A stretch of 64,000 bases of DNA, from IMG/VR virus record IMGVR_UViG_3300042391_000634, positions 271,631 through 335,630 of that record. One strand, 5' to 3'. Shown here in pieces: positions 1,703 to 61,610 of this stretch. The notes under the pieces are model-generated. The model was not told the origin of the DNA. It worked only from the letters and a program-made list of their open reading frames with translations, and searched no databases. A program made the position numbers and the translations under genes. Position 1 is the first letter of the stretch. Every line of letters begins with the position of its first letter.

Positions 1703-2963
1703 TAGATGGGATAGTGAAACCAATACCTTCAAATATAATGGAGGAGACAAATTCACATTTAATTTCCAACATCTATTATTACATTTTCAAATAGAAACAA
1801 AGGAACAAAATAAATTTGAAATTAAATCACACAATTTAAGTGAAGTTTATTTTAGGCCCGATTTAAATTTTTATTACCCAATCGCACACGGTAATATTGA
1901 TATAATAAATTTATTTGTTGAAAATGAAGAAAAGGAAACAGAAAAATTTGAAAAGTCACCTTTAAGTGATGAAGTTATTGAATGTTTAAAAAAATGTAAA
2001 AATCTTAAAGTGATTATAGTGACTGAACATGAACCAGATTATGAAACTGGATTTGTTAGGTTATTAGAATATCTCGAATTAAAAAAATTAGACCCAAAAC
2101 AATTTTATGTTATTAATAATAATGAAAGATTAAATGATTTAAAGAAAAAATATAACAGTGAAATAAATGTACATACGTTACATTTTATTGCACATTCATC
2201 TAATTTTTCATTAACAAATGCTGGAGGATGTAATTGGATTGATGATAAGGAAGGTAAAATGTTTATGTGTTTTAATAAAACACCAAAACATCATAGATAT
2301 GCTTTATTGTGTTTTTTAAAAAAACAAGGATTATTAGAAAAAATTAATTGGTCGTTGGTACCACCATACGATTGTTTTCCGATTGGACATTACTATGATA
2401 AAATCTTTACTAAAGAACAAAAGGAATATTTTAAGGATGAAATAATTTATTTTAATGAACTTAAGTTCAAAAGAAGTGACATGGAAGAAGATAAAAATTG
2501 GTTTAATTTATTTAATGAACCTAATACCGAAGGTTTCCCGTCGTGGATGAGAATACCTGAGTTCGGTATGAATTATGAAAATTCATATATTAATATTGTT
2601 ACTGAATCTAAATTTTTTGATGATTTATTTGTTACCCATATTAGTGAGAAATCATATAGACCATTTTTCTATTATCAATTACCAATGATATTGGCAACTC
2701 AATATCATATTAAAACAATGAAAGAGAAATATAATTTTGATTTCTTTGATGACATCATAAATCACTCTTATGATAATGAACCAAATCAAATGAGAAGATT
2801 AGAGATGTTTGTTGAAGAAATTAAAAGATTAGATGGAATACAAGACCAAGTTAAAGAGTTCTATAAGAACAATAAACAAAGATTTGAAGACAATAAACAA
2901 AAGGTATGGAACATGTTGAATATTGTTGAAAAAGATTATCAATTTTTTGAAAGTTTAATATAA
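1665..2963 (+). CDS. putative glycosyltransferase (VTES...SEK family)
   Basis: CFNKTPKHHR and INIVTES...HISEKSYRPF...SYD motifs; glycan gene neighbourhood. Confidence 0.45.
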   Translation: MEEKNKILNLCYDRWDSETNTFKYNGGDKFTFNFQHLLLHFQIETKEQNKFEIKSHNLSEVYFRPDLNFYYPIAHGNIDIINLFVENEEKETEKFEKSPLSDEVIECLKKCKNLKVIIVTEHEPDYETGFVRLLEYLELKKLDPKQFYVINNNERLNDLKKKYNSEINVHTLHFIAHSSNFSLTNAGGCNWIDDKEGKMFMCFNKTPKHHRYALLCFLKKQGLLEKINWSLVPPYDCFPIGHYYDKIFTKEQKEYFKDEIIYFNELKFKRSDMEEDKNWFNLFNEPNTEGFPSWMRIPEFGMNYENSYINIVTESKFFDDLFVTHISEKSYRPFFYYQLPMILATQYHIKTMKEKYNFDFFDDIINHSYDNEPNQMRRLEMFVEEIKRLDGIQDQVKEFYKNNKQRFEDNKQKVWNMLNIVEKDYQFFESLI

Positions 2964-3703
2964 TGAGAACACTTTGGACGTTTGGATGTAGTTTTACTGC
3001 GGAGTATGACCCAATCGATGGAATATTTTTTCCATTTGAAAATGATTTTGATAAATATAAAAAATGGAGAGGAGGTAACTTACCACCAGTTTGGCCGACC
3101 ATACTCGGAGAAAGATTAAACTGTAAGGTAATGAATTGTGCCGTTGGGGGTTCATCTAATTACAACATTTTCAATCAGTTCATTAATGTATGTGAGTTAA
3201 TAAAACAAGATGATATTGTGGTGTTTGGATGGACAAACCTTACAAGATTTATATCTGTAAATTTAGATGAAAATATCTTTACACAAATATTAGTTTCAGA
3301 AAATAACTTCGGAGGAACTGGTTTTTCAAAAAGAACAATAGAAGAAATAATGTATAATAGATCTCATCCTTTATGGGCATTAGAAGTAAACCAATGGATG
3401 AGATTTATAAATGTATATTTAAATAACGTTGGTGCTCATAATTTTTATTGGACGGCTGACGAGACAATATTCAATCAACATAATATTCAAGAAGATGATA
3501 CAAAGTGTATCGTTGTAAGAGATGGGGAAAGTAATAAAACAAACTTGTTGGGTTATTTGAACTTACCAATGTTCTTTGATGGAGTTCTTAAAGCAAGAAT
3601 TGTTGAAGAAACTAATGGTATTGTAATTGATGACCATATGGGAGAATTTGGGCACAAAAATCAAGCGGACTATTTCTATAACCATATCATAAAAAATATA
3701 TAA
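2963..3703 (+). CDS. SGNH/GDSL-like hydrolase or acyltransferase
   Basis: FGCSF, GSSN and C-terminal DDHMG motifs. Confidence 0.7.
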   Translation: MRTLWTFGCSFTAEYDPIDGIFFPFENDFDKYKKWRGGNLPPVWPTILGERLNCKVMNCAVGGSSNYNIFNQFINVCELIKQDDIVVFGWTNLTRFISVNLDENIFTQILVSENNFGGTGFSKRTIEEIMYNRSHPLWALEVNQWMRFINVYLNNVGAHNFYWTADETIFNQHNIQEDDTKCIVVRDGESNKTNLLGYLNLPMFFDGVLKARIVEETNGIVIDDHMGEFGHKNQADYFYNHIIKNI

Positions 3704-5038: not shown

Positions 5039-6706
5039 ATGTATATAATAGGAATTTCAGCATTTTATCACGATTCATCTGTTTGTTTATTCAGAGATAA
5101 CCAATTAATATTTGCATGTGAAGAAGAGAAGTTCACAGGTATTAAACATGATGATTCGTTTCCAAAAAAAGCGTTGGAATATATCTACAAACAATATAAG
5201 ATAACACCAAAGAATTTACAGGCGGTTTGTTATTATGAAGACCCACAATTGAAATATCAAAGAGTAATGGAAAACATTAAACCTCAATGGTTTAAGAATC
5301 CATTATATTCATTAAAATCTTATTTGAAAATACGTAATAATGTAAAAGAGATTGATAAGAAATTAAAGGAGATTTGTTCCACCGTATTTTATTCAACACA
5401 TCACGAGGCTCATCAATATTATGCACATTATACATCACATTTTGAGGAGTCAACTTGTTTATCGGTTGATGGTGTAGGTGAGATTGATACCGTATCATTA
5501 GGTGTTGCCGATTATAATGGAATCAAATACAGTTCACTTGCAAAGTATCCACATTCAATGGGTCTTTATTACTCCGCATTAACCTCATATTTAGGGTTCA
5601 GACCAAACGAAGGAGAGTATAAGGTAATGGGATTAGCGTCCTATGGTGACCCCCAAAAGTATATTAAAGAGGTAAGAAACCTTATATCATTTAAATCAGG
5701 TAAGTTAGTATGTAATATGGATGTATTTTGTTGGAATAAGACAGATAAATCCATGTTCAATGAAAAACTTGCGGAACTATTAAGTGTTCCACAAAGATTA
5801 CCCGAAGAAACTTTAGAACAAACACACAAAGATTTAGCGGCCGCTGTTCAATTAAGATATGAGGAAGTATTGTTTGAAATTATTAAATCAATTAGACATG
5901 TAAGTAAAAGTCTAAACTTAACGTTGAGTGGTGGTTGTGCTTATAACGGAACCGCAAATGGTAAGATTATTGATAAGACACACTTTACACATCTTTGGAT
6001 ACCACCCGCACCATCAGATGCAGGATCAGCAATCGGTGCTGTTGTTCATTATTTAGTTAAAGAACGTAAAGTAAGGAGTAAAATTACAAGAAGTCCATTT
6101 TTGGGTCCTGAATATTATTACGATTATATTAGACGTGCAATTGGTATGAACAACTTTAAAAAATATGAATCTGAAAATAAATTAAGAACCCATATTGCTC
6201 AAAAAATATTTGAAGGTAAAGTAGTTGGGTGGTTTCAAGGACACATTGAATTTGGATCTCGAGCGTTAGGTAATAGATCTATTTTAGCTAATCCAACGTT
6301 TCCCGATATGAAAGATAGAATCAATAAGGTAATTAAAAAGAGAGAAGGTTTTAGACCATTCGCACCAATGGTTACTCAAGATAAACAACATCAATTCTTT
6401 GAAATGACGGATGATGTTCCATATATGAATCAAGTTGTTAAAGTTAAGGATGAATATAGAGACAAATTACCGGCGGTAACACATGTAGACGGTAGTGCTA
6501 GAGTTCAAACAGTTTATAAACACACAATGATACATGATTTATTAATCGAATTTGAAAAATTAAGTGGTTATCCAATTTTATTGAATACCTCATTCAATGT
6601 TAAAGATAAAACAATGGTATTAACACCAAAAGATGCCGTTGATACTTTCTTTGATACTGATATGGATATATTAGTAATGGGTAATTATGTTATGTATAAA
6701 AATTAA
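5039..6706 (+). CDS. O-carbamoyltransferase (NodU/CmcH family)
   Basis: YHDSS, HHEAH, DGVGE, EGEYKVMGLA, RALGNRS, KKREGFRPFAP, LLNTSFN. Confidence 0.93.
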   Translation: MYIIGISAFYHDSSVCLFRDNQLIFACEEEKFTGIKHDDSFPKKALEYIYKQYKITPKNLQAVCYYEDPQLKYQRVMENIKPQWFKNPLYSLKSYLKIRNNVKEIDKKLKEICSTVFYSTHHEAHQYYAHYTSHFEESTCLSVDGVGEIDTVSLGVADYNGIKYSSLAKYPHSMGLYYSALTSYLGFRPNEGEYKVMGLASYGDPQKYIKEVRNLISFKSGKLVCNMDVFCWNKTDKSMFNEKLAELLSVPQRLPEETLEQTHKDLAAAVQLRYEEVLFEIIKSIRHVSKSLNLTLSGGCAYNGTANGKIIDKTHFTHLWIPPAPSDAGSAIGAVVHYLVKERKVRSKITRSPFLGPEYYYDYIRRAIGMNNFKKYESENKLRTHIAQKIFEGKVVGWFQGHIEFGSRALGNRSILANPTFPDMKDRINKVIKKREGFRPFAPMVTQDKQHQFFEMTDDVPYMNQVVKVKDEYRDKLPAVTHVDGSARVQTVYKHTMIHDLLIEFEKLSGYPILLNTSFNVKDKTMVLTPKDAVDTFFDTDMDILVMGNYVMYKN

Positions 6707-7584: not shown

Positions 7585-8019
7585 ATGATATATTGGTTAA
7601 CAGGACAACCCGGATCAGGTAAAACAACATTAGCATCATGGATACAGGCGAGTTTCCCAATTAAATCTATGATAGTAGATGGGGACGATATCCGTGAGAT
7701 ATTTGTAAATAAAGATTATAGTGAGGAAGGTAGACGTAAAAATATAGAAAAGGCTCAGATTTTGGCTAAATTCTTACACCATAAAGGGTATACTGTTATT
7801 GTATCGTTAGTTTCACCTTATAGAGATCAAAGAGAACAATTTAAGATTGAAATGGGGGATGATTTGATTGAAATTTATGTTCATACCACAAATATTAGAG
7901 GTAGAGAACAATTTCATGTTAATTATGAGGAACCCCAAACCTTTTTTATTGATTGTGATACAACGGATAGTTCCGAATATAACACATTTATGGAATTAAG
8001 AAGAAAATTAAAAATATAG
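7585..8019 (+). CDS. cysC: adenylylsulfate (APS) kinase
   Basis: WLTGQPGSGKTT P-loop, DGDDIR, RRKNI, VSPYRDQR, YEEP. Confidence 0.88.
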   Translation: MIYWLTGQPGSGKTTLASWIQASFPIKSMIVDGDDIREIFVNKDYSEEGRRKNIEKAQILAKFLHHKGYTVIVSLVSPYRDQREQFKIEMGDDLIEIYVHTTNIRGREQFHVNYEEPQTFFIDCDTTDSSEYNTFMELRRKLKI

Positions 8020-8022
8020 AAT

Positions 8023-8406
8023 ATGAGTAAAAAATATGCGATGTATGTGGGGCGTTGGCAAAATTGGCATAAGGGTCATGAATGGCTCCTTAACCAACAA
8101 TTAGAGAAGGGAAAAGATGTGTGGGTGGCAATTAGAAATGTGGAGATAGATGAGAATAATCCAAAAACTGCTCAACAGGTGATGATGGATTTATCAGATA
8201 CTCAGTTCTTTAAAGAAAATTCACAAAGAATTAATATATCAATTATTCCAGACATTGAGAGTATCAATTACGGTAGAGGAGTTGGATATGACGTTATTTA
8301 CCACGAACCACCTGAAGAAGTAGCTAAAATTAGTGGTACAAGTATCAGAAACGGGTATATTGACTCAAATGGAGATATTATTGAATATCCTAATATGAAT
8401 AATTAA
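8023..8406 (+). CDS. HIGH-motif nucleotidyltransferase (cytidylyltransferase-like; possible minimal sulfate adenylyltransferase)
   Basis: GRWQNWHKGH, YGRGVGY, ISGTSIR; adjacent to the APS kinase. Confidence 0.65.
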   Translation: MSKKYAMYVGRWQNWHKGHEWLLNQQLEKGKDVWVAIRNVEIDENNPKTAQQVMMDLSDTQFFKENSQRINISIIPDIESINYGRGVGYDVIYHEPPEEVAKISGTSIRNGYIDSNGDIIEYPNMNN

Positions 8407-8649: not shown

Positions 8650-10140
8650 ATGAGAACAGTATTGATAGGTTCGGACTTTATGTACGACAAAGATGGTAAT
8701 TTAAAACCAATTGAAATAAATACATCAGTAGGTTGGGATGGTGCCGAAAAAGTAGAAGATGATGTAGATTGTTTAGATTTAACAAATTTATATCAATTTG
8801 TTGAGAATAACAATTTTCAAAATGTACATTATATTGGAAACATTGGTTTTTTTCACAAAACATTAGAAACACACTATAGTGGAAGTTCAGTTACATATGA
8901 ATTTCATAGTGTTAGTGCAACTGCCATTACTATACCATATATCGAAGATACAACCGATGTATTAATTATTAGAAGTGCATATGATACGACCGCATTAGTA
9001 GATGATACATATTGTAGAGATAAAATTGAATTTCTTAAATTAATTAAAGATTCTTCATTTAGTTCTCAATTTGTGTATAAAGATGAAACCAATACATTGG
9101 TTTCAAATATTACATCTATAAATGATAACGGTGAACATCCTAATTTTATACTTAAATCAATATTACCAAATTACGATATATCATTATACCCAAAATATTT
9201 TAAAGTAACGAATCAATCGGAATTAGATACTATTATTGCAAATAATGTTACTACCAATTATTTCTTAATGGAATATTTGTATAATCCAACTAAAATTTGG
9301 GGGGGACATCTGACAGTAATAAGAAGTTTAAATTTATTAGTTCCACCAAATTTAGAATCAATTCAACTTGGACAATATACAAAATTAAATCAAAATATGT
9401 TATTGACAGGTGTAACATATAATCTAACCACATTAGAAGTTGATGCAGATTTTAGATCTAGTTATAGTACACTTCCAATAATAGACAATGTTCCTAAATT
9501 GTTAGATGCAGACATGGTAGAAATGGCGGATGGTTCATTTAAAACTGCGTTGGATTTACAAGTTGGTGATAGTATTAAAACAATTGAAATTCCAAATCCG
9601 GCTGGAACTAGTATAGATAGTTATATATCATCCGAATTTGGTCTTACATATGAAACCTTATTAACTGATACAATATACACAACCAATGTCATTACCAATA
9701 AACAAAAAGTAAACACTTTAACTTTTATACGTGAATTAGTATTTGACGATAATAGTACGTGGGAAGATACATCCGCTTCACGTTATTTGATAGATAGAGC
9801 GGGTGTGGTTATGTTTAAATCTTTATTTGGAATATTTGCAGGAGATGTAGTTTTATTGTTAGATACTACCGATGAGAATATAAATTTTGTAAGAAAAACT
9901 GTTGTATCAAATACTGAATTTAAAAGAGTTTTTTCTGGATGGTTTATTTCAGTTGAGAATGCAAAATTATTCTTAACTAAAACTCCGGGTTCAACTAATA
10001 ACGAATCATTTGTTTCAATTGAACATAATAGAGCTCCTTGTCCTACCTATGCATGTAATAGTGGATGTGGATATTATTGTCCGTCTTGTCCAAAAAATCA
10101 ATCATGTGCACCGGACAATGAGTGTTCACCAATTTGTTAA
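8650..10140 (+). CDS. circularly permuted ATP-grasp domain + Hint domain + C-terminal 36-aa Cys-rich peptide
   Basis: N-terminal GSDFMYDKDGNLKPIEINT, later FILKS, YFLMEY and VIRS. Hint-like LLDADMVEMADGSFKTALDLQVGDSI ... FISVENAKLF ... IEHN. Then RAPCPTYACNSGCGYYCPSCPKNQSCAPDNECSPIC. Confidence 0.72.
   Translation: MRTVLIGSDFMYDKDGNLKPIEINTSVGWDGAEKVEDDVDCLDLTNLYQFVENNNFQNVHYIGNIGFFHKTLETHYSGSSVTYEFHSVSATAITIPYIEDTTDVLIIRSAYDTTALVDDTYCRDKIEFLKLIKDSSFSSQFVYKDETNTLVSNITSINDNGEHPNFILKSILPNYDISLYPKYFKVTNQSELDTIIANNVTTNYFLMEYLYNPTKIWGGHLTVIRSLNLLVPPNLESIQLGQYTKLNQNMLLTGVTYNLTTLEVDADFRSSYSTLPIIDNVPKLLDADMVEMADGSFKTALDLQVGDSIKTIEIPNPAGTSIDSYISSEFGLTYETLLTDTIYTTNVITNKQKVNTLTFIRELVFDDNSTWEDTSASRYLIDRAGVVMFKSLFGIFAGDVVLLLDTTDENINFVRKTVVSNTEFKRVFSGWFISVENAKLFLTKTPGSTNNESFVSIEHNRAPCPTYACNSGCGYYCPSCPKNQSCAPDNECSPIC
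9496..10029 (+). other. Hint (intein-like) domain lacking Cys1 and the block-B His but retaining terminal His-Asn
   Basis: K283 aligns to position 1, block B reads TSAS rather than TxxH, and the domain ends H459-N460. Confidence 0.68.
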
Positions 10141-10168: not shown

Positions 10169-10258
10169 ATGGCAATCATAATATCAAATACCGATATCAA
10201 TACTTTAAATACCACAATGACAACAATTGGTAGTTTAATAGTAACCGCAAACTCATAA
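10169..10258 (+). CDS. 29-aa Thr/Ser/Asn/Ile-rich micro-protein
   Basis: Translated by hand: MAIIISNTDINTLNTTMTTIGSLIVTANS; A-rich leader, ATG-GCA start. Confidence 0.55.
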   Translation: MAIIISNTDINTLNTTMTTIGSLIVTANS

Positions 10259-10290: not shown

Positions 10291-10821
10291 ATGATACACC
10301 TTATAAAAGGTATATTAACAAAAGAAGAATGTAACATTCTTAAAAACCAGTTTGATATTGATAAACAAATCAATCCATCACTAGATAAATCAAAGGTTAC
10401 AGGTAACACCTATGGGTATGAACCTTCTTATATTTTCAATGAATATTTAGATAAACTTAAATCATCTGTTTTAAAACTTAATTATAAAATAGATGATTTA
10501 AGAAATGTCAATTCATATATCAGAGAATACAAAAATAATGATTTTTTAAAAAAACATAGAGATAGAGACGATATTAGTGTTACTATGTCGATATGTGTAG
10601 AATCAACAATAAATAAAGTTTGGCCATTAAATGCTGAAATTGATGATATAGAATATTCTTTTAACACAAATGTAGGCGATGCTATTGTGTTATTTGATGC
10701 GGATAAAATATATCATTGGAGAGATATTTTAATTTGTAATCAAAATGAAAGAGTAATACAATTCTTTTTACATTGGACACCCATTATACAGATTACCAAA
10801 AAAATAAAAACAATAATATAA
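10291..10821 (+). CDS. 2OG-Fe(II) oxygenase
   Basis: LTKEEC N-terminus, HRDR (HxD), GDAIVLF, HWR. Confidence 0.8.
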   Translation: MIHLIKGILTKEECNILKNQFDIDKQINPSLDKSKVTGNTYGYEPSYIFNEYLDKLKSSVLKLNYKIDDLRNVNSYIREYKNNDFLKKHRDRDDISVTMSICVESTINKVWPLNAEIDDIEYSFNTNVGDAIVLFDADKIYHWRDILICNQNERVIQFFLHWTPIIQITKKIKTII

Positions 10822-11366
10822 TGAATTATAATTTTAAATATTATGGCCAAGTAGATGTATCTAATATCGATAATTTAATTGTAAATACCCAATTAAATTG
10901 GGATGAATACACATATAGACAAACCGATAGATATGGTCAATCCGATACTAAAACAATACCATTATTATGGTCTGAAGATTTTGTTGAAAATATAACTTGG
11001 AAATCTTATGAAATTTTTAAAGATAGTTTAATTGAAATAGAAAATAATTTAATCAATTTATTGGGAGAAGGTAAAATTGAAGTTGCACTATTAATTAATT
11101 TACCAAAAAATAAAAAAATATTACCACACATAGATTCTGGATATGAACATTTTTTTAAAACTAAAAGAATACATATACCAATTACAACAAATGATAAATG
11201 TAACTTTATGGTTGGTGAAGAAATTGTACAAATGAAACTAGGTGAAATATGGGAAATTGATAATGCAAATAAAGTACATGGTGTTAATAATGATGGGAAT
11301 ACTGATAGAATTCATTTATTAATAGACTATCAAATTTCTGACAAAAAAATAAAAACATTATTATAA
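10821..11366 (+). CDS. aspartyl/asparaginyl beta-hydroxylase-family 2OG oxygenase
   Basis: PHID, RIHIPITTN, GEIWEIDN, HGVNN, RIHLLID; start at the TAATG overlap. Confidence 0.82.
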   Translation: MNYNFKYYGQVDVSNIDNLIVNTQLNWDEYTYRQTDRYGQSDTKTIPLLWSEDFVENITWKSYEIFKDSLIEIENNLINLLGEGKIEVALLINLPKNKKILPHIDSGYEHFFKTKRIHIPITTNDKCNFMVGEEIVQMKLGEIWEIDNANKVHGVNNDGNTDRIHLLIDYQISDKKIKTLL

Positions 11367-11379
11367 ACAAAAATAAATT

Positions 11380-11961
11380 ATGGCATTTACATATACAATA
11401 GTTCCTGAATTTTTAACAAAAGAAGAATGTAATATAATATTAAATTTTTCATTAAAAGAATTAAAATTAGAACCATCTCAAATTGTTACTCATTATATGG
11501 GTGGTAATGTTGATACCGATATAAGGAAGTCAAATCAAGTATTTTTTCCATATTATAAAGAATTTCCATTTTTATTAGAAAAAATGAGTAAATTGTTAAA
11601 TAAACATATTGACGTTAAAGGATTTGATTTGGATTATGAACATAGTCAATTTCAATTTACAGAGTATAATTCAGGTGACCATTTTGGTTGGCATAGAGAT
11701 GTAATTGGTGAAAAAATTACAAATTATGATAGATATTGTTCGTTAGTGATACAATTAAATGATGAATATGAAGAAGGTGATTTACAAATAAAAGATATAG
11801 AAGATAAAACATTAACAGTTGAAAAAGGTGTTGGCAATTTAATATTATTTTTATCTAATATTGAACATAGAGTAGTGCCAGTAAAAAGTGGAGTTAGATA
11901 CACATTAGTTAATTGGGTAAAATTAATGGAAAAAAAAGATTATAAAAAAACATTATTATGA
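11380..11961 (+). CDS. PKHD/prolyl-hydroxylase-type 2OG-Fe(II) oxygenase
   Basis: QFTEY, WHRD, YEEGDL, HRVVPVKSGVRYTLVNW. Confidence 0.88.
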   Translation: MAFTYTIVPEFLTKEECNIILNFSLKELKLEPSQIVTHYMGGNVDTDIRKSNQVFFPYYKEFPFLLEKMSKLLNKHIDVKGFDLDYEHSQFQFTEYNSGDHFGWHRDVIGEKITNYDRYCSLVIQLNDEYEEGDLQIKDIEDKTLTVEKGVGNLILFLSNIEHRVVPVKSGVRYTLVNWVKLMEKKDYKKTLL

Positions 11962-11962
11962 T

Positions 11963-12274
11963 ATGAAATTAGATTTTAAAGAAATATTCACAGCTTGGTA
12001 TAATGTTGTAAATCATACTCCTGAACAAAGGGAGTTGGCAGATAAAAGATTTGCAATATGTTTAGAATGTCCATCTAAAAAAGAAATATTAGAAGGTAAA
12101 GAATGGTCTTTAAAATGTGGAGAATGTGGTTGCCCATTAAAGGCGAAAGTTTATACAAAAAAAACATATAACAATAAAGATGGTTCATGTCCACTTAATA
12201 AATGGAAAGAAATTGAAATAGAATATATAAGTAATGTCAAAACCAATTATAAAACCAAAAAAACAATTATATAA
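11963..12274 (+). CDS. small Cys-rich metal-binding protein
   Basis: RFAICLECP, CGECGCPLKAK, CPLNKW. Confidence 0.65.
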   Translation: MKLDFKEIFTAWYNVVNHTPEQRELADKRFAICLECPSKKEILEGKEWSLKCGECGCPLKAKVYTKKTYNNKDGSCPLNKWKEIEIEYISNVKTNYKTKKTII

Positions 12275-12276
12275 CA

Positions 12277-12966
12277 ATGTCGTACTTAATAAACGATAAT
12301 CTTATATGGATAATTACACCCAAATGTGCTAGCAATTCAATAGAAACAGCCCTATTAAATTCAAATTTAAAGTTAAAAACGTATAACGATACGTTAGATC
12401 CAAAATCACATATACATATACCTTTAAATGATTCATTAAATTATTTTGGTAATAAAGAAACTGTATGCATTACCAGAGATTGGTTTGGAAAATGGTTAAG
12501 TGCATTGAATTTTATTTGGGACATAATTGAATTTTATTGGGGGTTTACACCTATTTGTAAATGGGAAGATATTGATAATGATTTCATATATAATACATTC
12601 GATACGGAATTTTTGAATCATTTACATTGGATAAATGATGAGGGATATGAAAAATGTATAATTAAATTATTAAAAATTAATCAGGACGAAATTAATAACA
12701 TACCAAAAAATTTACCACCAGTAGTTATGGTTTTAATTTCTGAAAAATACTATAAAAGTAATCAAAAATGTACGTATGAATTTGATATTAAAGAGTTAGA
12801 TAAATTTGTTAAATTTATTGAAGATAGGTTTGGTGAAAAAATACAATTAGATAATTTAAACACATCGACGAAAAGACCAAATAAAATAATAATAAACGAT
12901 GAGTTAAAATCTTTTGTTTGGGAAAAATTTGAAAAACCATTTGAAAAACGAAATCAATTAATTTAA
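12277..12966 (+). CDS. sulfotransferase-like protein
   Basis: PKCASNSI (5'-PSB-like), RDWFGKWLS (3'-PB-like), late N-T-S motif. Confidence 0.62.
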   Translation: MSYLINDNLIWIITPKCASNSIETALLNSNLKLKTYNDTLDPKSHIHIPLNDSLNYFGNKETVCITRDWFGKWLSALNFIWDIIEFYWGFTPICKWEDIDNDFIYNTFDTEFLNHLHWINDEGYEKCIIKLLKINQDEINNIPKNLPPVVMVLISEKYYKSNQKCTYEFDIKELDKFVKFIEDRFGEKIQLDNLNTSTKRPNKIIINDELKSFVWEKFEKPFEKRNQLI

Positions 12967-13636: not shown

Positions 13637-14689
13637 ATGAACAATCAAGTTGAGTTAAAGAATTATTTTTGTAGTGTACCATTTACATCATTAGAAATAC
13701 ATAATAATGTTTGTTTTGTTTGTTGTCCATCTTGGTTACCAAACAAAGTGGAACTTAGTGAAATTCCTTTAAAAGATGTTTACAATAGTGAACCAATTAT
13801 AGATATTAGAAATTCTATTTTAGACGGTTCGTTTAAATATTGTAGTAAAGAGCTTTGTCCTTATTTAAGTAAATTAGTAAACTTTGGAGTAACATCAGGA
13901 CCCGTTACATTAAAATCACATTCAAATATTAATAGCCCTATTATAGAAAATAATACACCGAATGATTTAATAATGAATTTTGACAGGACTTGTAATTACA
14001 AATGTCCATCATGTAGAGTAGATTTAATTGTTGAAAATAGTGAAGGAATACAAAGAGTTGAAAAAACAATTGAAGATATTGACACATATTATTCAAAATA
14101 TGTAAAAACTTTGTATATAACAGGATCAGGCGACCCATTTGTTTCAGTTGGATTTAGAAATTATCTAAGAAATTTTAATCCTAAAAAATACCCAAATTTA
14201 TCATCAATACATTTTCACACCAACGCATCTATGTGGAATAAAGAAATGTGGGATAGTATGCCAAATGTACATAAATATGTTCATACGTGTGAAATTAGTA
14301 TAGATGCCGGCACCAAAGATACTTACGAAAATAAAACGAGATTAGGTGGTAATTGGGAAAACTTATTAAATAATTTAAAATTTATTAGCACTTTACCACA
14401 TATGAATGTAAAAACGTCATTTGTTGTTCAAGATACAAATTATACTGAAATGGAAACCTTTTATAATTTAATGTATTCTATATTTGGCAAAAGAGTAAAT
14501 GTATTTTTTGGTAAGATAACTAATTGGGGAACATTTTCTGACGGTGAATTTAAATTAAAACAGGTATGGGATACCGAACATCCAGAACACATGTTATTTA
14601 AAAAAGAATTTAATAAAATATGGAAAAATCAAAACCTTTTTCATAACTTATATGAATTCATAGACAATACACATACATCGTTGATATGA
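13637..14689 (+). CDS. radical SAM protein with N-terminal Cys-rich (twitch/SPASM-like) region
   Basis: CNYKCPSC (CxxxCxxC), GSGDPF, HTN, ISIDA; N-terminal CSVPF...CC...C...C. Confidence 0.85.
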   Translation: MNNQVELKNYFCSVPFTSLEIHNNVCFVCCPSWLPNKVELSEIPLKDVYNSEPIIDIRNSILDGSFKYCSKELCPYLSKLVNFGVTSGPVTLKSHSNINSPIIENNTPNDLIMNFDRTCNYKCPSCRVDLIVENSEGIQRVEKTIEDIDTYYSKYVKTLYITGSGDPFVSVGFRNYLRNFNPKKYPNLSSIHFHTNASMWNKEMWDSMPNVHKYVHTCEISIDAGTKDTYENKTRLGGNWENLLNNLKFISTLPHMNVKTSFVVQDTNYTEMETFYNLMYSIFGKRVNVFFGKITNWGTFSDGEFKLKQVWDTEHPEHMLFKKEFNKIWKNQNLFHNLYEFIDNTHTSLI

Positions 14690-22539: not shown

Positions 22540-24567
22540 ATGAAAATATTTGACGCAAACATCTCTGGATCACTAAACGTATCGGGCTCAGCCCATTTCT
22601 TTAATGATCTTACAGTAGACGGAACACTAAACGCCACCATCAGTGGAACATCCACAAACGCACTATCCTTAAACACAACGGGTTCCGCTCGTTTTGCTAC
22701 AACAGGTAGTAACGTATTTAAAGCCGACCAAACAATTAGCGGTTCACTTTATGTGACTACCGATATAATATTAAATGGACAATCATATACTGGACAAACT
22801 TCTGGTACATCAGGAACTAGTGGATCTAACGGTTCTTCAGGAACCTCAGGATCTAGTGGATCTAACGGTTCTTCAGGAACCTCAGGATCTAGTGGTTCAG
22901 ATGGTTCTTCAGGAACTTCAGGAACATCAGGTTCTTCAGGATCTAACGGATCTAGTGGAACATCAGGTTCTTCAGGATCTAACGGATCTAGTGGAACATC
23001 AGGATCTAGTGGTTCTAACGGTTCTTCAGGAACATCAGGTTCTTCAGGATCTAACGGATCTAGTGGAACATCAGGATCTAGTGGTTCTTCAGGAACATCA
23101 GGAACTAGTGGTTCTTCAGGAACTGCGGGTACATCAGGTTCTTCAGGTACCGTTACCTTATCAGGAACACAAGACAATGGTTTATTAACACTTAATGGAT
23201 CTTCTCCAAATGTGTCTGTAGAATCTAATTTAACATATGACGGATCTTTATTTAAGGTTAATTCAAACACAACAATTACAGGTTCATTGACCATTACCGC
23301 AAACTTAAACGTTTTAGGTTCTTCATCAATCACATATACTACTGCATCTCAATTAAGAGTAAATGATAATGTTATAACGGTTAATACCGCATCGCCAGGT
23401 GTAAGATTTGGTGGTTTATCTGTAATGGATAGTGGATCAAATAGTAGTACGGGATCTATATTTTGGGATTCATTAAATAACAGATGGGTATATCAACAAG
23501 AATCAGGATCATCTTACACAGGTGGTATCATAATGTCTGGTCCAAGAAACAATGGGGCTTTAGGAAGTGAAACTACTTTAACAAACAATAAAGTTGCAAA
23601 ATCTACGGGTGGAGATCATCTTGGTGATAGTAATATCAGTGACGACGGAACGACGGTTACAATTAGTACAAATACAGAAATTACAGGTTCATTAAAGGTA
23701 ACAAATGGTATCACAGGTACTTTAACAGGTAATATCACAGGTAATGCGGCAACGGTAACAACAAATGCTAACTTAACAGGTAATGTAACCTCAGTTGGTA
23801 ATTCAACGACAATAGCTGCGGGAGTTGTAACCGATTCAATGTTAGCTGGTTCTATATCAAACGCTAAATTAACTAACTCATCTGTAACGGTTTCGGCAGG
23901 AACAGGTATGAGTGGTGGTGGTGCGGTATCATTAGGTGGTACAGTGACATTAACAAACGCGGGTGTAACCTCAATCACAACAAATACAGGATTAAGTTCA
24001 AACGTAGGTGCAACAGGTGCGGTTACGATTACAAATACAATAACCAATAACAACCAATTAACAAATGGTGCGGGATATCTTTCAACCGCCGTAACCTCAG
24101 CAGTGGCTGGTACGGGTGTTGGGGTAAGTGCAGCAACAGGAGCCGTAACATTCTCAATCGGTCAAGCGGTAGCAACATCATCAAACGTTCAATTTAACTC
24201 ATTGGGTGTAGGAACTGCGGGACCAGTAACAGCAGGTTTAATCAGAGCAACAAATGATGTTATTGCGTTCTACGGTTCTGATGAAAGACTAAAAGAAAAC
24301 ATCACACCAATTGAAAATTCCTTAGATATCTTAAAACAAATAAATGGTTATTACTTCGATTGGAAGGAAATGCCAGGTATTCATGAGAACGAAGGTCATG
24401 ATATAGGGGTTGTAGCACAAGAAATTGGTGCTGTTTTACCTGAAATCGTAACAACAAGAGAGAATGGTTATATGGCCGTTAAATACGAAAAATTAGTTGC
24501 ATTGTTAATTCAAACAAACAAAGAATTATTAAATCGTGTTGAGGCTTTAGAAGCTAAAATAAAATAA
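22540..24567 (+). CDS. tail fibre/virion fibre with Ser-Gly repeat and C-terminal peptidase S74 intramolecular chaperone
   Basis: G/S/T/N-rich body; SDERLKENI...GVVAQE...VKYEKLVALLIQ followed by a coiled coil. Confidence 0.85.
   Translation: MKIFDANISGSLNVSGSAHFFNDLTVDGTLNATISGTSTNALSLNTTGSARFATTGSNVFKADQTISGSLYVTTDIILNGQSYTGQTSGTSGTSGSNGSSGTSGSSGSNGSSGTSGSSGSDGSSGTSGTSGSSGSNGSSGTSGSSGSNGSSGTSGSSGSNGSSGTSGSSGSNGSSGTSGSSGSSGTSGTSGSSGTAGTSGSSGTVTLSGTQDNGLLTLNGSSPNVSVESNLTYDGSLFKVNSNTTITGSLTITANLNVLGSSSITYTTASQLRVNDNVITVNTASPGVRFGGLSVMDSGSNSSTGSIFWDSLNNRWVYQQESGSSYTGGIIMSGPRNNGALGSETTLTNNKVAKSTGGDHLGDSNISDDGTTVTISTNTEITGSLKVTNGITGTLTGNITGNAATVTTNANLTGNVTSVGNSTTIAAGVVTDSMLAGSISNAKLTNSSVTVSAGTGMSGGGAVSLGGTVTLTNAGVTSITTNTGLSSNVGATGAVTITNTITNNNQLTNGAGYLSTAVTSAVAGTGVGVSAATGAVTFSIGQAVATSSNVQFNSLGVGTAGPVTAGLIRATNDVIAFYGSDERLKENITPIENSLDILKQINGYYFDWKEMPGIHENEGHDIGVVAQEIGAVLPEIVTTRENGYMAVKYEKLVALLIQTNKELLNRVEALEAKIK
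22801..23151 (+). repeat. 39 tandem X-G-S/T triplets (9-nt unit, 36-nt higher-order unit SGT-SGS-SGS-NGS)
   Basis: Counted directly from the DNA and protein sequence. Confidence 0.92.
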
Positions 24568-58980: not shown

Positions 58981-59331
58981 ATGTTTAATTATTATAAAAT
59001 ATTCTTAGGAATATTATTTGGGATTATAGGGCAAACCGGAACTTTCTGTCAATTACAAGTTTCTTACAAGTATGGTTGGTATGATAGATATCCTTGGTTA
59101 GTTATACTAGCAAGTGTTCCTTTAGGGTGGATTTATATCCTATCCGTTAATAACTTTATAGAAGGTTTTGGAGGTCAAATATGGCCATCAAGGTTGGTTG
59201 GTTTTGGGGTTGGTGTAATAGTATTCACTCTTATGTCACATTTCCTATTTAAAGAGCAATTAGACCTTAAAAATGGTATATGTTTAGGTTTAGGACTCAC
59301 AATAATACTCGTACAATTATTTGTTAAATAA
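58981..59331 (+). CDS. four-helix membrane protein (SMR/DMT-like size and topology)
   Basis: Four hydrophobic segments in 116 aa. Confidence 0.5.
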   Translation: MFNYYKIFLGILFGIIGQTGTFCQLQVSYKYGWYDRYPWLVILASVPLGWIYILSVNNFIEGFGGQIWPSRLVGFGVGVIVFTLMSHFLFKEQLDLKNGICLGLGLTIILVQLFVK

Positions 59332-59338
59332 TAAATTT

Positions 59339-60103
59339 ATGGCGACATTATTTGGATTCGGTGATAGTTTTACCGGCGGACATTTTTTAGATAAAGACTT
59401 TGAACCATATAAACAGTGGAAGGAGTATAGGGGAGGAGATTTACCACCAGTGTGGATAGATTTATTAGGTGATAAACTTAATATGAATGTTATAAACTAT
59501 GGACATGGGGGTAACTCAAATCAAGAAATATTTGAAACAATATGTAACAACTGTTATCAATTTAAAAAAGAGGATATTGTTATAATTAACTGGACTGAGA
59601 TACATAGATTTAGATGGGTCGCATATGGTAATTATAGGGCTCCCGAAGGTATTTTTAATGTAGATTATTGGAGAAGAATATCTGCCGCTTCTGATGATAG
59701 TGAAGAAATTAAGAACCAAACAAAAATGGATATTATTCAAAATAGATCTTCTTATTTGTATATTGAAGAGATCTATAATTATGAAAAAATTATAGATCAA
59801 CTATCAAAATCAATTGGATTTAATGTTTTCTATTGGTCTGGTGATAGTGATATTATTTACAGATTACCGTCAGATAAATTAAAACAAAAGAAATATATTA
59901 TTAATGATTTAATATCTAATATTACAGAAAATCCCCCCAACATCTTTAGATTAGGTGGTATTTTCTTTGATACAATAAAACATTACGGTGGGTTAATAGT
60001 TAAAGAAGAAACAAATGAAAATTGTACCGATACACATTTAGGAGAAAGTGGACATAGAGTTCAATTTGAATTATTTTATAATTATATTATAAAAAATATT
60101 TAA
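59339..60103 (+). CDS. SGNH-like hydrolase
   Basis: FGDSF, GNSN, DTHLGESGH. Confidence 0.72.
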   Translation: MATLFGFGDSFTGGHFLDKDFEPYKQWKEYRGGDLPPVWIDLLGDKLNMNVINYGHGGNSNQEIFETICNNCYQFKKEDIVIINWTEIHRFRWVAYGNYRAPEGIFNVDYWRRISAASDDSEEIKNQTKMDIIQNRSSYLYIEEIYNYEKIIDQLSKSIGFNVFYWSGDSDIIYRLPSDKLKQKKYIINDLISNITENPPNIFRLGGIFFDTIKHYGGLIVKEETNENCTDTHLGESGHRVQFELFYNYIIKNI

Positions 60104-60870
60104 TGAGTACATTATTTACATTTGGTTGTAGTTTTAGTGAGGAATTTAGTGTTCTATTACCAAGAACATCCCCCAATACAAGAGTTGACTATATTGAACA
60201 ATACTTTAATGGTGTTGCACCAGATTCATGGCCTACGATGTTATCTAAAAAGTTAGGATTTGATATTAAAAATTATTCAGGTAATGGGGGGTATAAAGAC
60301 CCAATAAATAACATAGGTGAAGGTAATTGTAATCAATCGGTATTAAACAACATCGCATATTATTGTAATCAGTTTAAGAAAGGGGACATTGTTATTGTTG
60401 AATGGACGTATATTGAAAGGTTTAAATGGGCGAACGAAACAGGTAAGTCAATGATATCTGTTTATCCCGCGTTTGTTCCTGGTACTGGAATACCTGATTA
60501 TCCAGATTACATCGATAATAACACAGCGGAGAACATATTTGTTAATAGAACAAATCCAATATGGATTAATGAATTATTCATTCAACAGAAACTATTAAAT
60601 CAATTTGCAGATAATACAGGATTTAATATATTTTATTGGACTGTAGATAATAATATTATAAATTATAAGAATAAAGAAATTAAAAATGATAAAAAGTATT
60701 TGTTATCAGATACGTTGGGTGAAAGAGATTATATGAATTTATTTAAAGAAGAAGGTGCTAAAACAATAATAGAAGAAACAAACGAAAAAGTCAGAGATTG
60801 GCATTATGGTGTAACGGGTCATCAGGTTCAATGTGATTTGTTTTATAACTATATTATAAAAAATATTTAA
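60103..60870 (+). CDS. SGNH-like hydrolase
   Basis: FGCSF, GNCN, DWHYG. Confidence 0.7.
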   Translation: MSTLFTFGCSFSEEFSVLLPRTSPNTRVDYIEQYFNGVAPDSWPTMLSKKLGFDIKNYSGNGGYKDPINNIGEGNCNQSVLNNIAYYCNQFKKGDIVIVEWTYIERFKWANETGKSMISVYPAFVPGTGIPDYPDYIDNNTAENIFVNRTNPIWINELFIQQKLLNQFADNTGFNIFYWTVDNNIINYKNKEIKNDKKYLLSDTLGERDYMNLFKEEGAKTIIEETNEKVRDWHYGVTGHQVQCDLFYNYIIKNI

Positions 60871-61610
60871 TGAATACATTATTTACATTTGGATGTAGTT
60901 ATACTGAAGATTTTGAAAGAGTTCTTGAAATTACTAAAAATAGTGATTTTATACCCGCACAAAGAAGATATGTTGAAAATCATTTAGATGGTAGAACACC
61001 AAAATCGTGGCCTCAATTATTGAGTGAAAAATTGGAGATAGATTTAAAAAATTATGGAGGAGGTGGAATGTCAAATTATCAAATATTTGAAGAGATATGT
61101 GAACATTGTAATGAATTTAAAGAAAACGATATTGTAATAATTGGATGGACACATATAACGAGATTTAGGTGGCCATTCAACAACGGGGGTTGGTCCTCTA
61201 TTTTTTCAGATTTTACCGAAACCACTTCTGAGTTGATGAGTAAAATAACACACAGTGAAATATTAGTTAATAGAACAAATAAAATGTTTATTAATGAAAT
61301 ATATCAATATCAAAAACTATTAGAACAATTTTGTAAATTACTTGGTGTTAAATTATATTTTTGGTCATCAGATGATAACATTATATATAAAGAAAATAAA
61401 GAATTTTTTACCGATAAAAAATATTTATTAAATGATTTAATTTCAAATAATAACAACATCTTTAACATCATACAAAAAAATGGTGGTAAAACAATAAACG
61501 AAGAAACTAATGGTGAAATACCTGATAATCATTTAGCGGAAACTGGACATAGAGTACAAGCTGAACTTTTTTACAATCACATTATAAATGGGAAACAAAA
61601 AATTATTTAA
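60870..61610 (+). CDS. SGNH-like hydrolase
   Basis: FGCSY, GMSN, DNHLA. Confidence 0.7.
   Translation: MNTLFTFGCSYTEDFERVLEITKNSDFIPAQRRYVENHLDGRTPKSWPQLLSEKLEIDLKNYGGGGMSNYQIFEEICEHCNEFKENDIVIIGWTHITRFRWPFNNGGWSSIFSDFTETTSELMSKITHSEILVNRTNKMFINEIYQYQKLLEQFCKLLGVKLYFWSSDDNIIYKENKEFFTDKKYLLNDLISNNNNIFNIIQKNGGKTINEETNGEIPDNHLAETGHRVQAELFYNHIINGKQKII

Follow-up and report, generated by a model that had tools for sequence, protein, structure and literature searches.

Can a single phage polypeptide supply a ligase, a domain that cuts the chain and the small peptide that the cut sets free? This question is raised by a gene of 496 codons (8650..10140, + strand) in the genome of an uncultured giant bacteriophage, of which we analysed a stretch of 64,000 nucleotides, referred to here as the window. 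The predicted protein has three parts, a permuted ATP-grasp domain, a Hint domain and a Cys-rich tail. We favour a reading in which it processes itself, its Cys-rich cargo being released and possibly ligated, and would put the probability of this reading at roughly 45 %.

Three parts of one gene

The reading frame contains no internal stop, and with 496 open codons at a genome GC content of 29.8 % and homologous clusters numbering at least 770 at 90 % identity and 330 at 50 % identity (E ≤ 1e-3; at least 330 in the family) it is not a chance frame. On re-reading it, all of the strings quoted in the original prediction were found in place. These are GSDFMYDKDGNLKPIEINT at residues 7-25, FILKS at 166-170, YFLMEY at 204-209 and VIRS at 223-226, followed by the Hint landmarks K283 (position 1), T374-S-A-S377 (block B), H459-N460 (end) and R461 (+1). 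An in-frame stop lies upstream and all relatives share an M[KR]xV start, so this N-terminus is the true one and the permuted motif order is no artefact of truncation. A truncated or split ATP-grasp was considered and ruled out, as the upstream gene encodes an unrelated DUF2061 membrane protein and the same Met starts all relatives. The family is large, unannotated and known only from uncultured phages. A tblastn search of 50,697 deposited phage genomes with the window protein, three distant relatives and two long cargos returned no match, and Pfam, PHROGs and NCBIfam scans of the whole protein and its parts, together with a sequence search of the PDB, returned nothing meaningful. Literature searches for a ligase-Hint-Cys tail architecture found no relevant description, and the combination of a ligase-type domain, a Hint domain and a Cys-rich mini-peptide in one protein appears to be previously undescribed.

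Residues 1-282 (8650..9495, +) form a circularly permuted ATP-grasp-like domain, recognised by AF2 modelling and Foldseek and matched by no Pfam model. A shallow alignment of 25 sequences gave a poor AF2 model, while one of 73 sequences gave a pLDDT of 93.6 and a pTM of 0.89, and the three-domain alpha/beta fold of ATP-grasps was found in the model and by Foldseek. The best Foldseek match was yeast glutathione synthase (E 1.5e-5, probability 1.0), followed by weak matches to PurK, RimK, LysX and ITPK1 (E 0.18-0.5); the BFVD viral structure library held no counterpart of the domain. When a profile was compared with the PDB, eight of nine matches were ATP-grasps, each of them weak (E 0.12-2.7) and all aligning at a beta-hairpin of residues 7-25 (8668..8724, +) that carries D9...E22-x-N24 as a putative Mg2+/ATP-binding motif. 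Residues 8-36 align with the E-x-N motif that biotin carboxylases and D-Ala-D-Ala ligases carry C-terminally, and the motif, spaced D9-x12-E22-x-N24, is N-terminal here where it is C-terminal in ordinary ATP-grasps.

Among 111 diverged relatives D9, E22, N24 and R108 (8971..8973, +) are invariant. K169 within HPNFILK (9154..9156, +), a candidate ATP-phosphate-binding Lys, is kept in 110, and R225 within VIRS (9322..9324, +), which is invariant in the narrower alignment A2, in 109. Conservation of these candidate Mg2+/ATP- and phosphate-binding residues makes an active ATP-dependent carboxylate ligase probable. The Glu of YFLMEY that should form the hinge, E208, is present in only 64 of the 111, so the assignment of this string as an ATP-grasp motif is weak. 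Pfam matches among family members were weak (RimK, ATPgrasp_ST and YheCD), and the CP_ATPgrasp_1/2 models gave no match to the window protein at E ≤ 10 and were not among the top families of 73 diverged members.

Residues 283-460 (9496..10029, +) adopt a Hint fold in the AF2 model (pLDDT 75-93). Foldseek matched them best to BIL2 (6y75; E 2.7e-7, TMt 0.71), then to hedgehog (1at0; 9e-6) and BIL 2lwy and, at E ≤ 1e-3, to over 40 intein chains. The window protein alone matched no Pfam Hint model. Comparison by hhalign of the family Hint alignment with an alignment of canonical Hints, whose members exceed the Pfam PT-HINT or Intein_splicing thresholds, gave a probability of 98.1 % (E 1.2e-13).

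The last 36 residues, 461-496 (10030..10137, +), make up a hypervariable tail, the predicted released cargo. It contains 8 Cys with a spacing of 4-3-3-2-5-4-3, which on our own reading fits neither ferredoxin-type nor metallothionein-type motifs, and a single Lys within a C-P-K motif. Its composition is 21 % Cys, 13 % Pro and about 3 % acidic residues in a genome of ~30 % GC. Where the bodies of relatives are 80-90 % identical the non-Cys positions of their tails are 43 % identical, and 182 of 184 tails have an even number of Cys; Lys occurs in all 64 single-Hint tails and exactly once in 43 of them. From the even number of Cys one may speculate on disulfides or paired metal sites, and hence on a stable extracellular or virion-exposed mini-protein. 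Estimates of dN/dS (NG86) were about 0.9 for non-Cys tail sites versus 0.33 and 0.46 for the two domains, although dS is saturated at about 1, which makes these values unreliable and no evidence of positive selection. Both fold assignments of the original prediction, permuted ATP-grasp and Hint, are borne out by the models and alignments, as is its hypervariable peptide on a conserved Cys framework. Its assignment of YFLMEY is weak, and as a whole its interpretation is supported in part.

Neighbouring genes and possible substrates of the ligase

Under the favoured reading N460 would cyclise and cut the N460-R461 bond, freeing the Cys-rich peptide with a new N-terminus in the manner of C-terminal-cleaving BIL and pretoxin Hint domains. 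The ligase domain, together with a DUF6171-like Cys protein encoded nearby, might then form an amide bond involving the cargo, for which the new alpha-amine, the single Lys and the C-terminal carboxylate are candidate groups, and the outcome could be ring closure or attachment to an acceptor. That the ligase acts on the freed peptide at all, cyclising or attaching it, is speculative, as is any tailoring of the peptide by the neighbouring oxygenases, sulfotransferase and radical SAM enzyme.

The original prediction had missed three conserved partners of the gene, the DUF6171-like protein, a sulfotransferase-like protein and a micro-ORF. About 82 of 84 related loci have the micro-ORF (29 aa; 10169..10258, +) directly 3′ of the gene, and its product is 24-30 aa long among relatives with an N-terminal half rich in Thr plus Asp/Glu. 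The DUF6171-like protein (103 aa with six invariant Cys; 11963..12274, +), probably a Zn-ribbon, adjoins the family in every context examined, being adjacent in loci L001, L004, L005, L086, L088 and L089 and in 71 of the 84 related loci. The L088 homologue scores 31.8 bits against DUF6171 (PF19668; cut-off 27) and the L086 homologue falls below the threshold; the window copy has no direct PF19668 match and is 41 % identical to the L088 protein. It ends in a basic/hydrophobic K-x-T-I-I tail, and literature searches on DUF6171 found nothing relevant. A probable PAPS-dependent sulfotransferase (229 aa; 12277..12966, +) is linked in 68 of the 84 loci and in the distant locus L004. Three 2OG-Fe(II)/Asp-Asn-hydroxylase-type oxygenase genes (10291..11961, +) lie between the micro-ORF and the DUF6171-like gene and are absent from this position in L001, and a twitch/SPASM-like radical SAM enzyme, below threshold (13637..14689, +), is present in 44 of the 84 loci. 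None of the known RiPP-class enzyme models reaches threshold, and a promoter and terminator scan around the gene stayed at chance level. Trp halogenase is present in distant loci; setting it against Trp-rich tails was uninformative, with the halogenase in only one of the loci compared and Trp-rich tails also occurring without it.

The surrounding genes also fit glycan decoration, so that other substrates for the ligase are on offer. UDP-glucose dehydrogenase (527-1702), carbamoyltransferase (5039-6706) and glycosyltransferases make sugar-modifying genes abundant nearby, distant locus L086 likewise has a UDP-glucose dehydrogenase, two genes upstream, and two family members weakly match a "sugar-transfer associated ATP-grasp". 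The protein might therefore be a polyprotein in which the Hint domain cuts at N460 merely to part two independent products, the Cys peptide acting alone and the ATP-grasp finding its substrate elsewhere. That substrate could be a uronic acid or other glycan-pathway carboxylate or, as in graspetides, the micro-peptide encoded directly downstream, with its N-terminal half rich in Thr and Asp/Glu. In some relatives the cargo is long, or the tail is followed by a second Hint, canonical and Cys-initiated. In the double-Hint relatives the Cys-rich segment lies between the HN and the canonical Cys1 Hint, matching the BIL1-Ubl-BIL2 logic of BUBL loci (PMC8616854), which marks it as excised cargo. The thioester-forming second Hint could activate the C-terminus of this cargo without ATP, yet all of the ligase residues are retained in these relatives, and the ligase may thus serve an unrelated role. 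We nonetheless consider separate fates for the two products unlikely. Ligase, Hint and cargo remain fused in one chain in relatives down to about 25-30 % identity, which is unexpected for unrelated parts, and the sugar genes are not kept beside the gene in all distant contexts. Graspetide ligases, moreover, are of the non-permuted RimK type and their precursors bear N-terminal leaders.

Predicted cleavage at N460 and the fate of the tail

The predicted site of Asn-cyclisation cleavage is the terminal His-Asn, H459-N460 (10024..10029, +). The Asn is the sole invariant column of the Hint alignment, at about 25 % identity, and the His is kept in at least 90 % of its members; in the wider set of 111 relatives N is found in 92 and H in 90, the remainder being mostly alignment gaps. 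Sequence conservation ends exactly at the Asn, and the part beyond the junction can be as short as about 4 aa or as long as 1,241 aa. The invariance of this residue and the extreme variability of the downstream part make self-cleavage after N460 likely, as inferred from the alignments.

The remaining catalytic residues are less complete. Position 1 is no Cys/Ser/Thr nucleophile in the window protein (K283) and varies among relatives between K, Y, H, A, S and G; block B reads T374-S-A-S377 in place of T-x-x-H, with S, T, A or N in the His column; block F has no conserved His; and a few members carry Q, L or A in place of H459. The unconserved block-F His, the substitutions of H459 and the unconserved E208 of the N-terminal domain all count against a self-processing ligase. 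Such an incomplete set would suit a Hint domain that is a spacer or adaptor, holding the attached Cys tail as a metal-binding or disulfide-stabilised binding module, for instance a targeting or adhesion tip. The relatives in which the cargo grows to domains of 500-1,200 aa point the same way, as their BACON carbohydrate-binding domains and neighbouring tail-sheath genes suggest a binding or structural role. In intein chemistry, however, the N-terminal acyl shift needs Cys1 and the block-B His, and Asn cyclisation needs neither. The residues lost here serve the N-terminal reaction and not Asn cyclisation (PMC8616854). A terminal Asn kept as the only invariant Hint column is also hard to explain without catalysis, and with conservation stopping exactly there we regard an uncleaved protein as distinctly unlikely. 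The +1 residue, R461, is no Cys/Ser/Thr and is highly variable among relatives, sometimes Pro, so that cleavage may be slower in some cases, and this variability argues against a specific alpha-amine substrate.

An HN-ended Hint directly before a hypervariable C-terminal module recalls the PT-HINT toxins, and one distant relative (P0189) touches the Pfam PT-HINT model. Together with the fast divergence of the tail and the small partner gene that always adjoins, this could make the protein a phage equivalent of the polymorphic toxins, with the Hint domain freeing a diversifying effector (toxin, inhibitor or signal) against the host or competing phages and the DUF6171-like protein acting as an immunity or handling factor. 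We think this very unlikely, as an enzyme occupies the N-terminus, where no secretion or trafficking domain is present, and the tail is far below known toxin domains in size and matches solved structures at chance level at most (E 0.59). The DUF6171-like partner, furthermore, is conserved (36-42 % identical across contexts where the ligase-Hint protein is about 27-36 % identical) and does not co-diversify with the tail. In three relatives (P0233, P0234 and P0238) the HN is followed by only 4-7 residues, almost no cargo, which weighs against the cargo model and would allow cleavage to matter for its own sake, but that N460 cleavage merely removes a functionless autoinhibitory tail to switch the ligase on is highly improbable, since a disposable tail should neither keep an even Cys framework, a single Lys and a composition against AT bias nor expand to domains of 500-1,200 aa.

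The self-processing reading can be extended, in a form that we find rather unlikely, to a new class of peptide maturation. A 460-aa self-removing enzyme leader would ligate or cyclise its own hypervariable Cys-framework cargo with the DUF6171-like protein as helper and tailoring enzymes docked by means of a common K-x-[TS]-L-[IL] tail at the C-terminus, to yield a stable mini-protein that diversifies and is displayed on the virion or released. The architecture suggests that phages make and process small peptides in a previously unseen manner. If the chemistry proposed here is true, it represents a widespread and wholly unannotated phage route to disulfide- or metal-stabilised small peptides, in which one polypeptide supplies an ATP-dependent ligase, a self-cleaving protease and the product. 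Hint autoprocessing would then extend past inteins, hedgehog and polymorphic toxins, permuted ATP-grasps would gain a second natural lineage, and a compact, genetically encoded cut-and-ligate module would be available for possible use in peptide engineering. A fixed framework with hypervariable cargo would point to an arms-race interface between the phage and its host or environment. Read as cautiously as possible, the family, with the DUF6171-like partner that always accompanies it, is still a well-defined experimental target.

Comparison with known systems

The phage protein shares with PT-HINT domains and B-type BILs a Hint fold that ends in His-Asn, lacks a +1 nucleophile and directly precedes a highly variable C-terminal module, and with it the expectation of cleavage by Asn cyclisation without splicing. 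It differs from them in having an enzyme upstream in place of a secretion or repeat domain, a Lys at position 1, no block-B His, a score below every Pfam Hint threshold, a 36-aa Cys cargo in place of a toxin domain, and a phage as its host. From polymorphic toxins as a whole it is further set apart by its N-terminal ATP-grasp and by a neighbouring DUF6171-like gene that is conserved rather than diversifying, and from inteins by the absence of Cys/Ser/Thr at position 1, of T-x-x-H and of a +1 nucleophile. The best structural match of the phage Hint domain is to the BUBL loci of Tetrahymena (BIL1-ubiquitin-like-BIL2; PDB 6y75), in which a C-terminal-cleaving Hint and a Cys1 Hint release and activate a Ubl for ATP-independent conjugation (PMC8616854). 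The double-Hint relatives share with these loci a cargo that lies between Hints of these two kinds, whereas the window protein has the first Hint only, a Cys-rich cargo instead of a beta-grasp Ubl, and an ATP-grasp fused upstream.

Eukaryotic glutathione synthetase (PDB 1m0t), itself a circularly permuted ATP-grasp, is the one structure that residues 1-282 match strongly, and the elements of both proteins stand in a non-canonical order. The phage domain is however much shorter (285 versus about 490 residues), is 12-14 % identical to it and gives no hint of a glutathione-type substrate. CP_ATPgrasp_1/2 are permuted ATP-grasp families of peptide and amidoligase systems, and the concept of a permuted ATP-grasp amidoligase in a peptide-modification setting is common to them and the phage protein, although the latter matches neither model.

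Among RiPP pathways, graspetides, ranthipeptides/SCIFF and disulfide-framework peptides such as cyclotides and conotoxins are the nearest parallels to the hypervariable phage core with its conserved Cys framework. In ranthipeptides/SCIFF a radical SAM enzyme acts on Cys-rich cores, and graspetides are made by ATP-grasp enzymes; the phage loci share with RiPP pathways a nearby ATP-grasp, radical SAM enzyme, hydroxylases and sulfotransferase, with Trp halogenase in distant loci. Here, by contrast, the "leader" would be a 460-aa self-removing enzyme, and no RiPP-class model reaches threshold. The phage system differs from graspetides in its permuted ligase and in a tail with only about 3 % acidic residues, while the micro-ORF does have Thr and Asp/Glu. 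The LysX-LysW/ArgX amino-group carrier system, finally, also comprises an ATP-grasp ligase and an adjoining small Cys-rich partner, and LysX is among the weak fold matches of the N-terminal domain. LysW has an acidic tail (EDWGE), whereas the phage partner ends in K-x-T-I-I and the phage ligase is permuted and fused to a Hint domain and its cargo.

The gene family and its N-terminal domain

The target gene (window 8650..10140, + strand) is open over 496 codons without interruption, and each string quoted in the original prediction was found at its residue. Given a genome of 29.8 % GC and a large homologous family, this ORF is not a product of chance. A word-indexed search identified at least 770 homologous clusters of ~495 amino acids with 60-77 % identity, and an exhaustive profile search 330 clusters (50 % identity) at E ≤ 1e-3, with 137 scoring below 1e-30. 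The source contig, IMG/VR UViG_3300042391_000634 (335.6 kb), is that of a tailed phage, on the basis of a 675-aa protein (22540-24567) that matches tail-fibre and baseplate families and whose C-terminus matches pelagiphage HTVC008M and cyanomyoviruses. Genes within the window are densely packed in the same direction, and tail-sheath genes adjoin relatives of the target. The sole match among 185,579 species genomes was L089, a 540-aa relative (30 % identity) on the 248 kb contig CBFHJJ010000001.1 of a Flavobacteriaceae MAG, the start of which is overlapped by a DUF6171-like gene. This contig may derive from a phage that was co-binned with the MAG; alternatively, it may indicate that the host belongs to the Flavobacteriaceae. 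On one phage contig (IMGVR_UViG_3300042892_005961, 211 kb) the gene is present as two paralogues ~38 kb apart (L043 and L067, 49 % and 46 % identity to the window protein). Four ~250-aa ORFs at both window ends (2963-3703, 59321-60103, 60103-60870 and 60870-61610) have near-identical endings (F-Y-N-[HY]-I-I-[KN]), indicating another paralogous family repeated in this genome.

As a single sequence, residues 1-282 were without a match in Pfam, PHROG, NCBIfam or PDB sequences. AlphaFold2, run with an alignment of 73 diverged relatives, gave a confident model (pLDDT 93.6, pTM 0.89) whose sole strong PDB match by Foldseek was yeast glutathione synthase (E 1.5e-5, probability 1.0), while PurK, RimK, LysX/ArgX and ITPK1 matched weakly (E 0.18-0.5) amid unrelated folds of like E-value. 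Eukaryotic glutathione synthetase is the classic circularly permuted ATP-grasp, and since Foldseek alignments follow sequence order, a strong match to it together with weak matches to ordinary ATP-grasps is expected of a permuted ATP-grasp. The profile of the same alignment yielded nine weak matches to PDB sequences, eight of which were ATP-grasp enzymes (biotin-carboxylase domains, D-Ala-D-Ala ligases); in every case query residues 8-36 aligned with the C-terminal Mg2+-binding strand of the enzyme (positions ~256-311), in independent agreement with the permuted order. Scanned individually, the 73 members produced only three Pfam families matched by more than one member, including RimK and ATPgrasp_ST, all weakly, and the window protein and these members fell outside the Pfam CP_ATPgrasp families. 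Model, structural match and strand alignment together uphold the permuted ATP-grasp originally proposed. The proposed 'hinge Glu', E208, did not hold up, being kept in only 64 of 111 diverged relatives. The same relatives show no variation at D9, E22, N24 and R108 and almost none at K169 (110/111) and R225 (109/111); D118 is invariant in the 73-member alignment. The permuted order as an annotation artefact was ruled out by an in-frame stop 5′ of the start, an unrelated upstream gene (a DUF2061 protein) and the M-[KR]-x-V start common to all relatives.

The Hint domain and the sequence that follows it

For residues 283-460 (pLDDT 75-93 in the full-length model), structural matches comprised over 40 intein chains, two BIL domains (BIL2 from the BUBL locus of Tetrahymena, 6y75, E 2.7e-7, TM 0.71; one from Clostridium, 2lwy) and the autoprocessing domain of hedgehog (1at0). 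When profiles were compared, the family's own Hint aligned at 98.1 % probability (E 1.2e-13) with the canonical second Hints that several relatives carry, which pass Pfam PT-HINT or Intein_splicing thresholds. This alignment places block B (T-x-x-H) on T374-S-A-S377, where the His is missing, so that both the Hint fold and the absent block-B His were recovered as predicted. Position 1 is Lys in the window protein and K, Y, H, A, S or G among relatives, and the +1 residue after N460 is highly variable. The domain is therefore incapable of splicing or of an N-terminal acyl shift. It does retain the residues required for Asn cyclisation, i.e. C-terminal cleavage: in the family profile the terminal Asn is the sole invariant column and the preceding His the sole other at ≥ 90 %. 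Two caveats are that the block-F His position is variable in the family and that a few members have Q, L or A in place of H459. A binding module that is never cleaved is among the main alternatives.

The ATP-grasp and Hint body is constant across the family and the part after H459-N460 varies. Most members carry Cys-rich tails of 20-65 aa; P0233, P0234 and P0238 have next to nothing, and others have extensions of 150-1,241 aa, some with BACON domains (P0185, P0189, P0206). Two long-cargo relatives (L005:150-5153, 1,667 aa, and L088:8001-10994, 997 aa) lie directly 5′ of DUF6171-like and tail-sheath genes, a placement that may point to virion-associated cargo; their cargos gave no match among deposited phage genomes.

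Sequence conservation collapses beyond N460. In pairwise comparisons identity at non-Cys tail positions is 43 % for bodies that are 80-90 % identical and 27 % for those at 70-80 %, and 182 of 184 tails have an even number of Cys (8 in 133, 6 in 39), in line with the predicted hypervariable peptide on a conserved Cys spacing. Even parity speaks for disulfides or for paired metal sites more than for thioether links made from one side. The most frequent spacing, 4-3-3-2-5-4-3, can be read as two alike four-Cys halves, each initiated by C-P. Tails are rich in Cys (21 %, against 0.6 % in the body), Pro (13 %), Ser (11 %), Gly (9 %) and Tyr (8 %), which runs counter to the AT bias of the genome. They are nearly devoid of charged residues save one Lys, which in 113 of 120 close tails lies in a C-P-K motif; Lys is present in each of the 64 diverged single-Hint tails, exactly once in 43. 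dN/dS decreases from tail to Hint to ATP-grasp, but dS is saturated and positive selection is not claimed. Comparison of the tail with solved structures gave nothing above chance level (best E 0.59). A toxin-like effector is another of the main alternatives.

About ten representatives (P0174, P0180, P0205, P0219, P0224 from locus L004, P0227, P0232, P0246, P0257 and P0261) carry a Cys-rich segment after the HN followed by a canonical Hint with a Cys start (C-F-[IV]-A-G-T) and a V-H-N end plus a few residues; P0261 also has a third. The six Cys-rich inter-Hint segments lack Lys and have a Gly-rich end, while their single-Hint sisters have Lys after the last Cys, at the end. Ligase residues are retained in both forms, and the double-Hint forms argue against the ligase being a mere activator of the cargo C-terminus. 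A zymogen switch also ranks among the main alternatives.

Conserved neighbours

Neighbours were counted in 84 loci, all from related phages, for which synteny alone is weak evidence; distant members (27-36 % identity) were therefore inspected. A ~100-aa Cys protein (71/84 loci, mostly the next sizeable gene) adjoins the gene in all distant members (L004, L005, L086, L088, L089 and the P0179 contig). It has six invariant Cys and a P-L-x-K-W motif, the L088 copy exceeds the Pfam DUF6171 threshold, and its family (793 clusters) is similar in size to that of the target. Other neighbours include a 2OG-Fe(II) oxygenase (71/84), a ~229-aa protein (68/84) and a twitch/SPASM-like radical SAM enzyme scoring below threshold (44/84), with a Trp halogenase additionally in distant loci. 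A 197-aa Asp/Asn-hydroxylase-like ORF (TTG start 10773) shares 49 nt (10773-10821) with the end of the 176-aa ORF before it, and its real start may be further downstream. The 675-aa tail-fibre-like protein contains a collagen-like segment (about residues 86-227), and the nearby P4H-type 2OG oxygenases could equally hydroxylate this protein rather than the Cys-rich tail.

The 229-aa protein recurs beside the distant P0224 (36 % identity, E 1e-43) and has a sulfotransferase signature that is coherent, though weak: at least one member matches each of four Pfam families of sulfotransferases, and the top PDB profile match, heparan-sulfate 2-O-sulfotransferase, aligns the 5′-PSB loop, His and RD...R...S. 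Upstream, in ~36 loci each, are a DUF2061 protein, a small nucleotidyltransferase, an APS-kinase-like protein and a carbamoyltransferase. Together the sulfotransferase signature and the APS-kinase-like gene suggest a sulfation module, whose possible genes (7585-8406 and 12277-12966) encode APS-kinase-like (144 aa), HxGH-type nucleotidyltransferase (127 aa) and probable PAPS sulfotransferase (229 aa) proteins. A carbamoyltransferase (5039-6706), a UDP-glucose dehydrogenase (527-1702), GDSL esterases, methyltransferases and glycosyltransferases share this cluster, a gene set reminiscent of Nod-factor-like decorated-glycan tailoring.

A micro-ORF of 24-30 aa begins 12-58 nt past the target stop in about 82 of 84 loci (29 aa in the window, 10169-10258, + strand, directly 3′ of the target) and has a conserved end (T-x-I-G-x-L-I-[VI]-x-x-N-S). 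Next to distant members, too, there are small ORFs (45 aa in L004, 50 aa in L089, 30 aa in L005), whose similarity to it is doubtful. A main alternative for the whole chain is a polyprotein in which the ligase serves the nearby glycan-decoration genes or this micro-peptide.

A C-terminal K-x-[TS]-[ILF]-[ILF] ending recurs among neighbour proteins that are unrelated to one another, in the window, in L004 and in 85 loci overall. Its carriers are 2OG oxygenases, DUF6171-like proteins (56/74), the 176-aa (31/33) and 199-aa (25/26) families, radical SAM and sulfotransferase-like proteins and the L004 Trp halogenase; upstream neighbour families have none. Only 4 of 93 window ORFs end in this way, all consecutive (10291-12274). 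The ending could serve for docking or as a degron, or it could act at the RNA level as a signal for coupling (nt AAAAAACAxTAxTA-stop).

Proposed maturation and comparison with known systems

The family combines in one conserved chain an active-looking permuted ATP-grasp, a Hint domain left with only its residues for C-terminal cleavage and a cargo that diversifies around a fixed Cys framework, with the DUF6171-like protein as constant partner. We infer, at a probability of roughly two in three, that N460 cyclises and frees the cargo. The ligase might then make an amide bond involving the cargo, and adjacent oxygenases, sulfotransferase and radical SAM enzyme might tailor it.

The searchable literature yielded no account of an ATP-grasp-Hint fusion, this family or DUF6171; a search of 50,697 deposited phage genomes gave no homologue, and one of a viral structure library no counterpart. 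There is a realistic chance that this is a new kind of peptide-maturation system. Eukaryotic glutathione synthetase, itself permuted, is the best fold match of the N-terminal domain. In BUBL loci a ubiquitin-like domain is bracketed by BILs, and its conjugation by BIL2 after release needs no ATP (PMC8616854). The double-Hint relatives bracket their Cys-rich segment alike, which is the best comparative evidence for the post-HN segment as excised cargo. Each domain type by itself is already known.
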